Notes: generated from the sequence alone by a model not told the origin. Positions 1-63,300 are shown, counted from the stretch's first letter. The stretch: DNA of 64,000 nt from Phaeosaccion multiseriatum (GCA_965112735.1 OZ218952.1:3968001-4032000), one strand, 5' to 3'. Made by a program: numbers and translations.

Positions 1-2781
1 TCTCTCTCTCTTCCGAGAAGGACCATTGGTACCCTTCTTCTTCGAGTCTCCTTCGGTTTCACTCCTTGAGCTGGATCGGGATCTCCTCGTGCCCCTCGTA
101 ACAGCCCCTCCCCCCGTGCTGCTACTACTGGTGCTCGTGGTGCGAGGAGCGTCCTCTCCTCCCTCTGCTGCTGCTGCTGCTGCTGCTGCTACTGCTGCTG
201 CTGCTCCTGCTGCTGCTCCCTTTCTGCCCTTGCTGGTACCGCCACTTTTCTCCGATACTTTCCCATCCGAAGCTTCATCAGACCCGGCTCTTCCTTTCCC
301 CCCTCCTCCTTCTTCGTCCTCCTCTTGCTCATTTCCTCCTCCTTCCTCTTTCTCTCCTCCTTCCTCTCCTCCTCCTCCTCCTCCTTCCTGTTCTTCTTCT
401 CCTCCTTCTGCCTCTGCTCCTCCTCCTCCCCCTCCTCCCCTTCCTCCTCCTCGCCCGACAGCAGCAGCGCCCCCCTCTGGCAGCTCCCAGGTGGGCGTGT
501 ACAGACTGGGGTCGAGCTCATCCGGGTCTTTGAGCAGCAGCAGGTCCAGTTCGTAGGCCCGCTTCGCAATCTCTCCGACGACGGTTCGCAGCTGCACCCA
601 TCCGTTACCGCTCCGCAGAACTCGTCCTGTGAGTGAGGCACAAGGAAAAGGAAAGCACACGCACACACGCAAGCACGGACGCACAGACGCACGCACGCAA
701 GAGAGAGAGACGGGGTGGGCCATCTTCAGCACAGCACCGTTGCACGGCCCAAAGGGAGGGGGAGTACAGGCGGTGCTGCTACTACTACTCAAATCACCAG
801 CTGCTACTGCTCTCAAAACTATTGACGTTACTCTGCTACTACTACTACTACTCCTACTACTCCTACTACTCCTCTACCACTATTCCTACTACTACTCCTA
901 CTCCTACTACTACTCCTTCTTCTACTACTACTACTACTACTACTACTGCTGCTGCTGCTACAGGCACGGGTCTTCCTACCCACCCATCCACCTGCCATCC
1001 CACCCATCCATCCTACCTGGATGCCCCATGAGGCGCCCCGAGGTGATGCGCACGACCTTCCCCACCCAACTGTCTGCATCCAAAGAAGTCAGCGGGGCCG
1101 TCTCAATGTTGGCCTGGGGATGGGGATACGCGCACAAGAGATGCGAGATGCGAAATAGACAGATGCGGAGATGCGAAATAGATGCCAGATCGGGGGTGGG
1201 ATATTGGAGGGCAAGCGAAGGGTGTGGGACGGGAGCAGGGGAGGAGACGGTTCATTTGCAGCCATGAAGTTCCAACTAGTGGGGGAAACAGTGCGACGAC
1301 GCAGGTCCGAAACGTATCACACATGTGTAACGGCTCATATACCCATATACCTCTCCCCTCGCCCGCTCTTCGAGACAAAAGAGACAAAAGATGGCACTAA
1401 ACAATCGTCAGTATGTATGTGCCTGTCTCGCACCACTGTTACGTACCAGCTCTTTTCGGGCCTTGGCCCAGTTCGCCTCCTTGGCCTTAAATACGGGGGT
1501 AGTCTCGGCCTTGGATCCGGAGAGAGGGCGAGAACCGCGTGCCTCATCATCATCCTCATCATCATCATCATCATCATCATCATCATCACGCCCCTCCCCA
1601 CGATCATTCTCTTGCTCGTCAGCGGCGGCGGCGGTGGCACGAGAAGCAGCAGCATCGGGGCGAGAATGAGAAGCGTCCGCAATGCCATCACTGCCCCCTC
1701 CTTTCTTAGTCGGGCCTGTTGCGGCCGTGGCACCATGGCCCTCTTGGCTGTTGGGATCTGCTACTTCTTCCAACGTCGTTGTCGGGCGAGTCGAAGTAGT
1801 AACAGCCGCAGTTGGCGATACAGCAACAACAGCAGCAGCAGCGGCAGCGGTCGACATTGACGCCATCGACGCTTTGTCGGAAGCATCGGTAGTGGCAGCG
1901 GCGGCGACAAACTCTTGTGCCCTACCATCGCCCTCACCACCGTCACCGCAGCGGCAATGAAATTTGCCGCTGACGGCTCTGCCGCATTTGGCGCAACCTT
2001 TGGCAGCACGACTCGTGCCGCTGCTGATACCGCCGCTAGCACTACTAGCACTAGCACTGGTACCGGCACTGGAGGAGACGGCCTTCTCAGTCTTCTTCAC
2101 TGGCGCATTCGGCGGCTCTATGACGGCCACTATGGGCGGTGAAGGGGGTGAGTCCAGCACGGCATCCAGGTCCAGCTTGCCTGCTGCCCCGGCTGCTGTT
2201 GTATCACCAACTGTTGCTCCTGCTTGGAGCTCAGCATCAGCCTCGCCTCGCTTTCTCTTCTCTGACCCCCTGCTGACGACGTCTTTGCCCCCTTTGCTGT
2301 TGGCGCTGCTGCTGCTGCTGCTGTTCCTGTTGCTGTCCCCCACTTTAACAGATCTGACTGCATTATGATGAGGGAAATAAACGTTGCCCTCTGTTGCCAG
2401 CTGCTCGAGACGGGGTGGGCGGATACAATACAATGTACAGAGGGAGGGAGGGGGGGGGGTTAGATACGACACACGCTCGAGGCTGGTTGCCAGTCAGAGA
2501 CAGAGACAGAAGAGAGAGAGAGAGAGAGAGAGCACATCCAGACCTAGACCAAGCACGCTTACGCTTACCCGTCCATGAAACTTCGGACTTGGCTTGGACG
2601 CAGAAGCGTGGTGGCTGGCGGCTACTCTGTTTCCGCCGCTTCTCCTGCCGCTCTTGGTGCCACTGCTCTTGCTGTTGCCGCTGCTACCGCCGCCGCCGCC
2701 GGTACTGCTGGGGCTGCTCAGGGTTACATTTACTCTTGTGCCGCCGCGGGCAAGGCGAGGGTGGCTAGTTGGCTCCATCAT
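1..2781 (-). CDS. Hypothetical protein with a KOW/SH3-like motif (WVGKVVRITSGRLMGHPGRVLRSGNGWVQLRTVVGEIAKRAYEL); 3' end runs off the window
   Basis: Exons ~2781-2569, ~2400-1447, 1113-1017 and 626-<1 join in phase through GT-AG introns. The ordered motif spans the 1017/626 junction. The rest is low-complexity Ala/Gly/Ser/Asp sequence with a small CxxC...HCxC cluster. Confidence 0.6.
830..950. repeat. (TAC)n imperfect microsatellite in an intron
   Basis: Directly visible tandem TAC/TCC array. Confidence 0.9.
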
Positions 2782-60300: not shown

Positions 60301-63300
60301 TCGTGCACGAAGAGCAGCGACGACGAAGATCGAACCGAGCGCAACGGACACGCTTCACCCCACGCCCCACCCAACCCACCCATGCTCTCCTCACCGTCCT
60401 CCGCCTGCTCGTCTTCCTCGTCCGACAGCGTCGCCAAAGAGTGACCGATACGGACATGCCTCGCACTGTACGCACCAGCAGCAGTAGCAGCACAAGAAGA
60501 CGTAGAAGTAGAGGTAGCCGTAGCAGCAGCTCGTGACTGAGACGACGGAGACTGCCGCCGCTGCTGCTGCTGCTGCTGCTGCTGATGCTGCTGTTGCTGC
60601 TGCTTCGCTCTTCGAAAGCACACCAGCTCTTTCCTCAGCCTCTTTCTCTCCTGCAACACCTTGGGCGCCACAACCACTTCACTCCCGGTGTACAAAAAAG
60701 GAGCGAGCCCGAAATTTACCTTGACGCTCTCGCCATTGCTGTGGAACCCCACCACCGGCACCAGCGAGGCCTCGGACACGTCTGTGAAACCCTCCCCGAG
60801 CAGGCGACCGTTACGCGTGTACCACACTGCCCTTGTCTTCATGTCCATCCCGCACCCAATGACGTCCCCTTCTACCCAGGTGGCCCAGCTTCCCGACGTG
60901 CGGCCGCGGCCGAACTTGCGTCCATCGTCTCCGTGATAGCCTGATTATTTTGATTCGATGTTAGATATAGAGGAAGGGAGGAAGGGTGGTGAGCTTTCAG
61001 GATACACGCACGCACGCACCGACATACACACGCACATACGCAGATACGTAGACACGCACAATTGCACTCTCCCTCTCTCTCTCTCTCACACACACACACA
61101 CACAGACACACACACACACATTCCACGCACCATATGAGTGATCAATCCAGCCCGGCATATGCTTCGTGATGGCAAAGTGCTGCGGATCCGCAAGCCCCAC
61201 CCCGATGGTCGTCTTCTCCCCGGGAGACACCACCGTAACTTCAAAGTAGTTGCCCGACTCCGCGCTGCCCTGAGCGGGCTGCCACACCAGCCCTCGAGCA
61301 AAGACGCACGCCACGCTCTCCACTACGGGTACATGAGCCAAAGTGCAGAGCTCTGACAGCTGTACTTCCTTGGCCTTGCGGCCACGTGGGGAACCTGTCG
61401 AGATGGGAGGTCAGAGGGAGGTGTGAGGAAGGAGGGAGTGAGTGGTGGGAGGGGGGGGGGGGGCGAGAGAGGGATGGAGCAAGGAAGGGAGGGAGGGAGG
61501 GACGGACGGACGGACGGACGGAGGCAGGGAGGGGCTAGAAACCCCAGCCCACTGGTACCTGAGCCAAACCAACCAACGCACCGTCCAGGATCGGAACCCC
61601 TCTCTCGACCAACCCTTCCACTCGAGCCTCGATCGCCTCCTCGAGGTCCTTCTGCGCCTGTTCCTCCGCGGCGGTCTCGTCGTGCCTCCGTGCCTCTGCG
61701 TGTTGGTGATACAGGTTCGACAGGGTGGCGTACGCCATTAGCACCCCGCTCGTTGCAGCCGCGGAGTTGCCTCCAAACAACAAGGAGAGGGTAGCTGGAG
61801 CTGGAGCTGCCGATGGTGTTCCATCACCACCGCCGTCGTGCTCCTCTTCTTGTTGCCCCCGCTGCTGCTGCTGCTGCTGCTGCTGCTGCTGCTGCAGCCC
61901 CTGTTGGCCGAAGCGCTCCAGCACGTCCCTTACGCTGCCCTCCAGCCCCAACTCGTGGAGCACAGGGGGGGGGCACACCTCTCTCGGCACCTGCAGGGCA
62001 TGTCTCGCCACCTCCCTAGCGAGCAAAGACCCGTCCAACAGCCCGGCCCGCACGCTCTCCATCGCCCACGGAGCCCAACCACTAGTGCTGCTGCCGCTCT
62101 GAGTCGCGTCGGTTCCTTCCAAGCGGCGTCGGGCAATGTCCGAGAGCCTCCTCAGCCCCACGACCTTCTTGAGCAGGGGCAAAATGCCGCACTGCGCGAG
62201 AAAGCGGTAGTCCCTTGCTTCGTAGTCCAACGCCCAACACGTGAGCAGCACATGCACAGTGCCCGACTGGAGACAGTCATAGGCCCGCCCCACCACGGGG
62301 CACAGCAGCTCGTACAGCCGCGAGAAGGCCGTCTGCACACCGCTCAGCACACCCGCGCTACATCCTTCGAGGTCGTTGAGGTAGTGATGGCGACTCAGTG
62401 CTGCCGCTGCCGCTGCCGCCGCTGCTGCCGTCGCTGCTGCTGCCTCTGCCTCCCGTCCGCCCCCTCCTCCTCCTCCTCCTCCTCCTCCAGCCGGTCCATC
62501 CCCTCGGCTCGTCCCATCCACCCCCCATGCCCTCCCCTCGGGCTGTTTCCCTCCTTCCTCTTGCCCCCCGCCAGAGCCCTCCCCCCTCTCCTCGCTGCGG
62601 ACGCTGTGGAAGGCCGGACGAAGAAAGGCAAGGGCGTCTGCCAGAGCCGAATGTAGCGGCGCAGGAGCATCGGCACCAGCAGCAGCGCTCGCACCTGCGC
62701 CGACGACGGCAGCGCTACTTTCTTTCTGACCCTCCCCCTTACCCTCACCTTCCGACCCGCTGCTGCTGCCTTTAGAAGACGGCGAGACACCGCCGATAAG
62801 AGATGCTTGCGATGGTGCCTGTGGCAGCTTCGGTAGCGGCAGCAATGGCGAAGGTCTCACCAACGTCTCCACGAGGGCCTTGAGGCCTTGCAGGCCGAAG
62901 GAACGCATGGCGGCCCTCTGACTGCGCGCTTTGAGGGCTCCTCTCAGACGAGCAGGGGTGGCCAAAACACCACCTGTGAGGATATACAGAGCACACGCCT
63001 GTGCGGCAGCCATGGCCGGAGACATAGCGTCGAAGACCTCCTCCTCCTCCTCCTCGTCGTCGTCGTCGTCGTCGTCGTCGTCGTCGTCATCGTCATCATC
63101 ACTATCACTACGGCCATCGCCATCACCATCACAGTAACCACCATGCTCACCACCCTCTCTACCATCGTGGATGCCTAGGTGCTGGTGGTCGTTGTCCTCC
63201 GCCTCCTCGTTGTCGGCCTCGCTGAAGCTCCCAAACGCCTTTACAAGACGACGCCCTGTTCCCACTCCTCCGGAACCACTGGGGTAGCGTTTGCCGTGTT

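Follow-up and report, generated by a model that had tools for sequence, protein, structure and literature searches.

A 64-kb window of the genome of the stramenopile alga Phaeosaccion multiseriatum (GCA_965112735.1 OZ218952.1:3968001-4032000; the window is this whole stretch) carries one short word many times over, and its copies look like a family of ultra-short dispersed repeats, in which the copied unit of DNA is far smaller than any known mobile element. The unit usually reads CAG-TTGGTGATA-CAG, spans 12-15 bases around the core G-TTGGTGATACA-G and occurs at about 0.4 copies per kb. Our preferred explanation, held tentatively and with a probability of roughly 0.4, is that a single fixed template supplied the sequence of every copy, each of which entered as a short insertion joined by microhomology of CAG or G.

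The word is in large excess over composition-matched expectation, as are signals of the DUS/USS, Chi and HIP1 type. The original prediction described a highly iterated core with 14 exact copies on both strands, and this is confirmed: the 64-kb window holds 14 exact matches to TTGGTGATAC, distributed over both strands, where dinucleotide shuffles predict 0.02. The 15-mer CAGTTGGTGATACAG has 20 copies in the window with at most two mismatches (0.12 expected) and 25, again on both strands, with at most three, where a third-order Markov model gives about 1.5. Its mismatch spectrum is 6, 11, 3 and 5 copies with zero, one, two and three mismatches, against 0, 0, 0.1 and 1.4 under the third-order Markov null. 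No other non-low-complexity 11-mer recurs at five or more dispersed places in the window. The word is non-palindromic, and its 25 copies divide into about 10 on the plus and 15 on the minus strand with no clear strand rule, mostly single, dispersed and 0.4-10 kb apart. A copy earlier placed at 793 proved weak, matching 10 of 15 bases only. The copies are as follows.

1809-1823, plus: one mismatch (CAGTTGGCGATACAG), antisense in the minus-strand ORF 1408-2472
2199-2213, minus: one mismatch (..ACAA), sense in ORF 1408-2472, reading VGDT
5587-5601, plus: one mismatch (..GATGCAG), in a Dis3L2-like exon, reading AVGDA; next copy 30 nt downstream
5617-5631, plus: exact copy, in the same Dis3L2-like exon as the 5587 copy, reading AVGDT; linker 24 codons longer than in relatives
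8863-8877, minus: one mismatch (..GATGCAG), antisense in the tail of the Dis3L2-like gene
13809-13823, plus: decayed copy, three mismatches, within an SRR1-domain ORF
23801-23815, minus: copy (AAGTTGGTGATACAG) with exact 13-mer, in non-CAG, probably intergenic DNA
25040-25054, minus: decayed copy, three mismatches (GTGTTGGTGGTACAG), non-CAG context
30730-30744, minus: one mismatch (CAGCTGG..), at the end of a (CAG)7 run
32494-32508, plus: one mismatch (..ACAT); partial second unit GGTGGTGATGCAG 22 nt later
36051-36065, plus: exact copy, downstream of the last exon of a HECT gene; little CAG nearby
37649-37663, plus: antisense copy (GCGTTGGTGATACAG) between two HECT-domain exons, in what is likely an intron; non-CAG context
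39494-39508, minus: exact copy, sense in a 2149-codon ORF, reading QLVIQ
42997-43011, plus: copy (AAGTTGG..), antisense in the 2149-codon ORF, reading VSPT; confirmed in four runs
44365-44379, minus: exact copy, in the 2149-codon ORF, reading VGDT
44821-44835, minus: one mismatch (CAGATGG..); confirmed in four runs
47059-47073, plus: decayed copy, three mismatches (GACCTGGTGATACAG); confirmed in four runs
47617-47631, plus: two mismatches, antisense in a SPRY-containing ORF, reading VSPS; confirmed in four runs
51392-51406, minus: exact copy, sense in a 2036-codon ORF, reading QLVIQ
52933-52947, minus: decayed unit (CAGCTGGGGACACAG), with another decayed unit immediately after it at a 15-nt period
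52957-52971, minus: one mismatch (..ACAA), head of a small local array
54106-54120, minus: one mismatch (..ATAGAG)
58322-58336, minus: exact copy, sense in a 1044-codon ORF, reading AVGDT
60000-60014, minus: decayed copy, three mismatches (CAGTTTGTGACTCAG)
61700-61714, plus: copy (GTGTTGGTGATACAG) with exact 13-mer, antisense in an 814-codon ORF, reading LYHQ, in non-repetitive coding sequence

A tandem repeat or microsatellite is ruled out by this arrangement of single, dispersed copies, the only head-to-tail array in the window being one decayed pair at 52933-52962, whose period is 15 nt.

Independent short-word assemblies of four runs, which represent two samples and two studies, reproduced the copies at 42997, 44821, 47059 and 47617 without a single difference, and the word is therefore real DNA. 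The two samples differ by one base in 5.9 kb, over which no presence/absence polymorphism of copies was seen between them. Many contigs from elsewhere in the genome carry a match to 42993-43013, so the motif is not limited to the 64-kb window.

All copies share a uniform extent. From AGCAGTTG to TGATACAG the k-mer count is flat at 14-19, with background level on either side, and the k-mer profile of the 64-kb window contains no half-motifs and no split or partial copies. The contigs from other loci match 42993-43013 only and then diverge (flank consensus agreement 0.46-0.56), similarity reaching no further than 4 nt beyond the 15-mer upstream and 2 nt downstream. None of the 25 copies has terminal inverted repeats, the ends CAGTTGG and GATACAG not being complementary, and no longer repeat or shared flank beyond one or two CAG units was found among them in the window, which bears out the earlier statement that both features are lacking. 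The sole direct repeat is the built-in CAG..CAG (or G..G), and the flanks at non-CAG sites differ (AA/GG, GC/CA and GT/GT).

The copies are also locked in phase with CAG. In motif orientation, 93 flanking CAG triplets are in phase with the word and 3 + 8 out of phase, and the polarity of the flanks is 104 CAG to 32 CTG. CAG occupies the unit's first and last triplets in 68-76% of copies and the next triplets in 36-48%, a signal that fades with distance; CAG stands immediately upstream in 12 of the 25 copies, and CAG runs lie on either side of the word, not solely as a 3' tail. The window holds 68 tracts of (CAG)3 or longer, with a mean of 18 nt. The motif is not a feature of most of them: only 11 lie near a copy, and among all 68 there is no second complex interruption that turns up repeatedly. 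The perfect 13-mers at 23801, 37649 and 61700 have sharp edges and no surrounding CAG repeat; long CAG homology arms are therefore unnecessary, and a terminal G or AG is enough. Copy 42997 has a single CAG triplet just upstream.

The word acts at the DNA level, because it has at least four protein readings in long ORFs (QLVIQ, VGDT, VSPT and LYHQ) and lies in a proven exon, a likely HECT intron and probable spacer DNA. The exon, which is Dis3L2-like and was established by two alignments, contains two copies within its lengthened linker. The four readings in long ORFs, together with the intron and spacer copies, rule out a protein sequence motif. A known RNA gene (tRNA, snRNA or Rfam family) was also rejected, as ARAGORN detected no tRNA genes in the window and Rfam gave no matches at the gathering score and nothing at the copies in e-value mode. 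The window contains no reverse transcriptase or transposase gene.

The variants look like the decay of one AT-rich master sequence, with 12 core substitutions from AT to GC and 1 from GC to AT. That master is single: besides being the sole complex dispersed 11-mer, the word is the only recurrent complex interruption of CAG tracts. Copies decay roughly as a Poisson process, about half of them being substituted, and at a mean divergence from the consensus of about 6-8% the family may no longer be active. As far as sampled, the word is lineage-restricted. Around the orthologous gene, Chrysoparadoxa (25 kb) and three brown-alga-like assemblies (28 kb) have no copies, and no comparable family was seen in related algae or in virus and metagenome collections. 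The collections contain no close relative, the best protein identity being 55-66%. There are no paralogous segments within the window.

Under templated insertion, each copy would start with a DNA break or nick and a short copying event. A free 3' end in ..CAG, or just in ..G, would pair with a fixed RNA or DNA template whose opposite-strand reading is CUG-UAUCACCAA-CUG; copying of about 12 bases from it would follow, and the new ..CAG end would pair back with the other side of the break. The outcome would be the same word everywhere, in CAG phase within tracts and free of terminal inverted repeats, visible target duplications and longer shared flanks. Neutral decay would afterwards shift the copies toward the genome's GC-rich base composition, and in exons they would survive only where multiples of three bases are tolerated, which is to say in disordered linkers.

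The uniform extent of the copies, their CAG phase and polarity and the sharp-edged 13-mers outside CAG all support this reading, as do the DNA-level action of the word, its single master, its lineage specificity and its physical reality. From these we infer that the copies are insertions, that the template acts in trans and that joining is by microhomology. Insertion of 9, 12 or 15 bases and same-length patch replacement fit the copies alike and cannot be told apart, and the tie to CAG tracts could partly reflect the sites at which insertions survive, not where they occur. The 64-kb window yielded neither a template RNA nor an enzyme or master copy. Processive, telomerase-like copying, for which a 12-nt period would be expected, is at odds with the 15-nt pair at 52933-52962 and with pairs 22-30 nt apart. 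Two readings had been offered in the original prediction. That of a footprint of site-specific insertion or conversion fits: the copies have the same extent, lie in CAG phase but also occur with sharp edges in non-repeat DNA, have four readings and vary in a way that looks like decay from an AT-rich master; that of a signal resembling DUS, HIP1 or Chi gained no positive support.

A more specific form of templated insertion is doubtful. Here RNA-templated repair, or a reverse transcriptase of the telomerase or Penelope kind, would serve as a dedicated writer that carries CUG-UAUCACCAA-CUG and places the 12-base word at CAG-ending breaks thousands of times genome-wide, exons included, now or recently. 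If so, no smaller copied genetic unit would be known, and the writer would be a natural system that puts defined sequence into chromosomes.

We think it unlikely that the word arose once within a CAG tract and has since spread as broken CAG tracts were repaired from others elsewhere in the genome, through template switching or ectopic gene conversion in which the flanking CAG repeats act as homology arms, although such spread would require no enzyme or special template. It would explain the phase-locked CAG flanks on one or both sides and their fixed polarity relative to the CAG strand, and would suit the local duplicates at 5587/5617, 32494/32516 and 52933-52971. Of the five CAGCAGGAGCAG strings that the window contains, three adjoin a copy, which also favours it, but shared-flank counts are as expected for CAG tracts. 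Those tracts are moreover short and seldom near a copy, and the 13-mers at 23801, 37649 and 61700 lack the repeat altogether, whereas arms cannot decay while the core stays intact. Generic copying should also have spread several complex interruptions, but just one exists.

It is quite improbable that the word is a functional signal, in which an abundant protein (a multi-repeat Myb or zinc-finger array, for example) or a modification system recognizes 12-15 bases and selection or biased repair maintains their frequency. Such a signal would account for the extreme over-representation and for perfect core copies in unrelated contexts, and the left half of the word, CAGTTG/ACCAAC, resembles Myb-type binding sites, a likeness we take as a lead only. 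A binding signal does not, however, predict attachment to one repeat type and phase: with 93 in-phase CAG triplets against 11, and CAG preceding 12 of the 25 copies, the word does not occur in any sequence context as DUS/USS, Chi and HIP1 do, and it has neither the palindromy of HIP1 nor the orientation rule of Chi. Substitution of about half the copies, Poisson-like and GC-biased, is what neutral decay predicts. Copies in coding exons with several readings, the lack of any copy in 53 kb of related algae, the non-palindromic form without a clear strand rule, and a literature search that found no description of the word as such a signal weigh in the same direction. A signal function and an insertional origin are compatible and could coexist.

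Equally hard to credit is a relic of a conventional element. The word could then be the 3' terminus of a non-LTR or Penelope-like retrotransposon that targets CAG and has left almost nothing but truncated copies, or the excision footprint or collapsed ends of a CAG-duplicating DNA transposon. Microsatellite-targeting elements do exist (PMC4486113, PMC5907723, PMC8449440), as do the Penelope-like Naiad/Chlamys elements (PMC8557442). A 3-bp target duplication could account for the CAG..CAG direct repeat, and the 13-mer begins with GT and finishes with AG. The absence of terminal inverted repeats in all 25 copies nonetheless speaks against a MITE or cut-and-paste transposon, and the flat k-mer profile without partial copies against a non-LTR retrotransposon or SINE tail; the window and the compared contigs show no truncation gradient, half-motif or longer copy. 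CAG runs on either side do not suit a 3' tail, and the window lacks a reverse transcriptase or transposase gene. We know of no excision mechanism (Tc1/mariner, hAT or PIF) that leaves an identical, non-palindromic 9-base footprint everywhere, as would be needed here. The original prediction was correct in setting the word apart from ordinary transposons and in matching it to no described element.

An adapter, base-calling or polishing error in the long-read assembly, or a protein-level motif, is close to refuted: the word does sit in simple repeats, where base-callers err, but four runs give four copies exactly at uniform depth, copies occur in non-repeat DNA, ordinary point substitutions are found among the copies, exon copies preserve the reading frame between conserved Dis3L2 blocks, and four different protein readings and non-coding copies rule out a protein motif.

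Several known systems invite comparison. With DUS/USS, Chi and HIP1 the word shares a short exact sequence, an excess of at least a hundred-fold and presence on both strands, within and between genes. Those signals come about in any context, through point changes that selection or biased repair favours, and their protein partners are known or suspected; HIP1 is palindromic and Chi oriented with replication. The alga's word, by contrast, sits in phase within a single repeat type and shows the decay of a copied element. The chromosome breakage sequence (Cbs) of Tetrahymena is likewise a eukaryotic word of 15 bases, dispersed and highly conserved. Its function is proven, and its few hundred copies lie in germline spacer DNA; the alga's copies, in contrast, lie within genes, and nothing points to programmed breakage.

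Micron of rice, MuTAnT of Medicago and MITEs of guayule/rice and pineapple target microsatellites (PMC4486113, PMC5907723, PMC8449440) and, like the word, are dispersed within one kind of simple repeat, on both strands and in many copies per genome. Unlike it, they are hundreds of bases long, with terminal or subterminal inverted repeats, target duplications and TA-type targets; the word has 12-15 bases, no inverted repeats and a home in CAG repeats, including those of exons. R1-clade LINEs target AC, TC or TAA repeats. Together with Naiad/Chlamys (PMC8557442) they resemble the word in preferring a simple repeat as target, and their reverse transcriptases are telomerase-related and prime on the target. 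They differ in their kilobase size, variable and frequent 5' truncation, pseudo-LTRs and tails of 30-40 bases, whereas the word has the same tiny extent in every copy and no coding partner seen in the window.

The closest analogue of the proposed mechanism is the insertion of telomeric repeats and of sequence templated by telomerase RNA at double-strand breaks (PMC2246262, PMC8537989). There too a short fixed sequence is copied from an internal RNA template into chromosome-internal breaks, and the insertions are recognizable solely against empty orthologous sites. Those insertions consist of the telomere repeat, to which pieces of telomerase RNA are sometimes added, and number tens to hundreds of events; the alga's word, by contrast, bears no relation to TTAGGG, occurs at about 0.4 copies per kb and is tied to CAG.

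The observation of a dispersed word is confirmed. Its core, TTGGTGATAC, has 14 exact matches on the two strands of the window against 0.02 expected from dinucleotide-preserving shuffles, which bears out the count in the original prediction, and the 15-mer that contains it, CAGTTGGTGATACAG, has 20 copies at two or fewer mismatches (0.12 expected) and 25 at three or fewer. The excess persists under a Markov background: copies with 0, 1, 2 and 3 mismatches number 6, 11, 3 and 5, whereas a third-order null of the window gives 0, 0, 0.1 and 1.4. The coordinates first proposed were right, except that the copy at 793 is weak, matching 10 of 15 bases. 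A blind search of the window for non-low-complexity 11-mers at five or more dispersed places returned only pieces of the word and a few CAG-tract edges, so the window has no other dispersed complex repeat.

As a reality check, we compared the stretch 42900-48800 (5,901 letters) with public assemblies of four runs, three of them sharing a sample and the fourth taken from a second sample, in another study. Contigs of every run (four of four) span copies 42997, 44821, 47059 and 47617 with no differing letters and no gaps, and depth is even along the stretch in all four, so all four runs are DNA. With four copies reproduced across two samples and two studies, the word is real DNA and not the assembly or adapter artefact that the original prediction had allowed for. 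A single base separates the two samples over the whole stretch; they are so nearly identical that presence/absence polymorphism of copies could not show. Many further contigs match 42993-43013 alone and then continue into unlike, CAG-rich sequence (consensus agreement 0.46-0.56). These are other genomic copies of the word, having in common just the word, four bases upstream and two bases downstream; the motif is not confined to the window, and its copies at other loci carry different flanks.

Outside this genome, a literature search for the 10-mer and 13-mer found no use in this sense, all matches being primers, and viral contigs gave no 21-mer match and just single chance matches to the 15-mer. 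A metagenome scan with the 18-mer returned 55 loci, each a single match in unrelated contigs, mostly of low GC. The sole metagenome match with a context resembling that of the window is at 3723-3737 of contig JACLAD010007979.1 (L016), a single perfect 18-mer inside a CAA/CAG run in the tail of a glycerol kinase; this contig is eukaryote-like, with intronless genes and a GC content of 0.49, and also holds CAGATGGTGATACAG inside an ankyrin repeat. Both occurrences are probably chance. The nearest relatives found by profile search were Discosporangium, Chrysoparadoxa and three Logan assemblies, with 55-66% identity in Dis3L2 at best. Presence or absence in related species had been proposed as a check; in these relatives, the 53 kb of contig sequence surrounding the orthologous Dis3L2 gene is free of copies, where about 20 are predicted at the window's density. 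As far as sampled, the word family thus appears restricted to the Phaeosaccion multiseriatum lineage.

The copies share a small, sharply bounded extent. Successive 8-mer counts along the extended motif are flat at 14-19 from AGCAGTTG to TGATACAG, with CAG background on either side, and this profile shows no half-motifs, split copies or 5'-extended copies in the window. In the 30-base flanks, read in motif orientation, there are 104 CAG and 32 CTG triplets; of the CAG triplets, 93 keep the phase of CAG-TTGGTGATA-CAG, and 3 and 8 fall in the other two phases. CAG forms the outer triplets of the 15-mer in 68-76% of copies, the triplets beyond them in 36-48% and those further out in fewer, and CAG runs lie left, right or on both sides of the word with no rule. 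Three copies (23801, 37649 and 61700) have no CAG repeat around the word, and at a fourth, 42997, one CAG triplet stands immediately upstream; at these four the conserved block, G-TTGGTGATACA-G, is sharply bounded. Extended flanks that several copies share (CAGCAGGAG, CAGCCG) are no more than expected for CAG tracts. Among the window's 68 tracts of (CAG)3 or longer, 11 are near a copy, and no other complex interruption recurs in the 68. No duplicated complex segment was found in the window for a filled-versus-empty comparison; three loci carry local duplicates of the word.

Local duplicates of the word in the window
5587 and 5617: two copies, 30 bases apart
32494: one copy, with a partial second unit 22 bases on
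52933-52990, reverse strand: copy 52957, then two decayed units (CAGCTGGGGACACAG, CAACTGGAGACACAA), head to tail with a 15-base period

The decayed units at 52933-52990, beside a good copy, give a GDT-type peptide repeat in a 2036-codon ORF.

Long ORFs of the window contain the word in four readings (QLVIQ, VGDT, VSPT and LYHQ). By alignment with relatives (A1 and A2), exon status is proven for one locus, the pair 5587/5617 of the Dis3L2-like gene, which carries CSD2 and RNB domains; the pair lies in frame, flanked by the conserved blocks DHGDFP..SL.GF and W.IP..RRDLR. The linker there has 39 residues; in Chrysoparadoxa and six brown-alga-like relatives it has 15. Both copies, together with GCA repeats, lie in the 24 additional codons. 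Copy 37649 is probably intronic, since two HECT-domain exons flank it and a pyrimidine-rich tract follows downstream; copies 23801 and 25040 lie among spacer microsatellites, in keeping with the predicted spread over exons, introns and intergenic DNA. The four protein readings and these varied locations indicate that the word is a DNA-level feature, which would be translated when it lands in tolerant linkers. In the Dis3L2-like linker (5478-5960, forward strand), relatives' sequences (L180-L182) encode G-V-D-T/A-G-A, for example GGA GTC GAT ACC GGG, and the window encodes A-V-G-D-T-A there, through the motif. Matching the two takes two gaps, and the DNA alignment gives no support; the likeness may be chance, and it could hint that the word replaces look-alike sequence.

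The reverse strand of 36968-64000 carries ORFs of 800-2150 codons, apparently a single giant gene that encodes two SPRY pieces and, at the C-terminus, a HECT domain; it is crowded with runs of single bases and of triplets (poly-G, poly-Q, poly-E, poly-S). At 37220-37380, a purine-run/pyrimidine-run inverted repeat (fold -88.6 kcal/mol, z -2.9) gives many miRNA model matches on both strands, all below threshold, and looks like a generic hairpin in an intron of the HECT gene. The spacer DNA (14180-34600 and elsewhere) is almost continuous microsatellite (CCCT x96, TCCC x112, GTCT x68, CAACAA x86, CTCTCCT x60, CTT x72), Tandem Repeats Finder giving 127 rows in 64 kb; the motif was never found inside the window's non-CAG spacer arrays.

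We could match the word to no described class of repeat. A U6 snRNA fragment has TTGG..GATACAG in common with it but would require a 2-base deletion and one change; a tRNA 3' end plus CCA, or an LTR primer-binding site, fits in form (CTGTATCACCA), but the conserved block continues beyond CCA. The tRNA D-arm or A box shares just CAGTTGGT, no tRNA genes were found in the window, and neither tRNA nor any other Rfam family matched. A Tc1/mariner end or footprint would account for the CAGT start and lacks an inverted partner, a collapsed 13-base GT..AG intron or introner left no split halves, and a tandem repeat was ruled out. An ordinary transposon, already discounted in the original prediction, was again rejected: the word has no inverted ends, no evident variable target duplication, no truncation series and, in the window, no coding partner.

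Substitutions in the 10-base core run from AT to GC in 12 cases, from GC to AT in 1 and otherwise in 3, and the 14 exact cores among 25 copies are the number that a Poisson process would give with about 6% divergence. This pattern is that of decay from one AT-rich master sequence in a genome of 60% GC, and not that of sites that strong selection holds individually.

The uniform tiny extent, the start after ..CAG or ..G and the end in CAG, together with perfect copies lacking CAG arms, constrain the mechanism. The simplest fitting model, to which we give a probability of about 0.4, is that a 3' end finishing in CAG or G would be extended by some 12 bases copied from a single fixed template; an RNA template would carry CUGUAUCACCAACUG. 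The new CAG end would then re-anneal, and inside CAG tracts phase would stay intact and junctions hidden. We infer both the template and the enzyme, and also that sequence was inserted and not replaced as a patch. Of the two readings offered originally, an insertion or conversion footprint is supported in outline, and a DUS/HIP1-like signal is not.

Ectopic conversion between CAG tracts is an unlikely alternative: it needs arms on both sides, whereas perfect copies occur without them, and it should spread several different interruptions, whereas just one complex interruption recurs. Somewhat less probable again is a functional binding or modification signal, which could coexist with an insertional origin but sits poorly with the decay pattern. 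We rate equally low a relic of a conventional element, as truncated retroelement tails predict variable extents, and excision footprints palindromic or variable scars, where every copy has the same tiny extent. An artefact or a protein motif is very improbable, given exact reproduction of four copies in four runs and two samples, and four different readings with probable intron and spacer copies.

Mobile or copied DNA has been thought limited to at least roughly 50-100 bases, since ends, hairpins or promoters must travel along. At about 0.4 copies per kb, this 12-15-base unit would number in the thousands if other windows resemble this one, which, if true, would break that limit and imply a mechanism supplying sequence in trans. 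The word also shows a route for sowing short peptides (VGDT, QLVIQ, VSPT) into disordered linkers of many unrelated proteins. If template and enzyme exist, they would form a natural sequence-writing system of interest for genome engineering; if the word instead serves as a binding site for protein or as a chromatin signal, DUS- or Chi-type words would have their first counterpart in eukaryotes. Both readings are directly testable in one organism with public reads. Among known systems, telomerase-related Penelope-like elements favour microsatellites (PMC8557442), and in the closest documented analogue of the proposed copying, telomeric repeats and fragments of telomerase RNA are inserted at sites of breakage (PMC2246262, PMC8537989).
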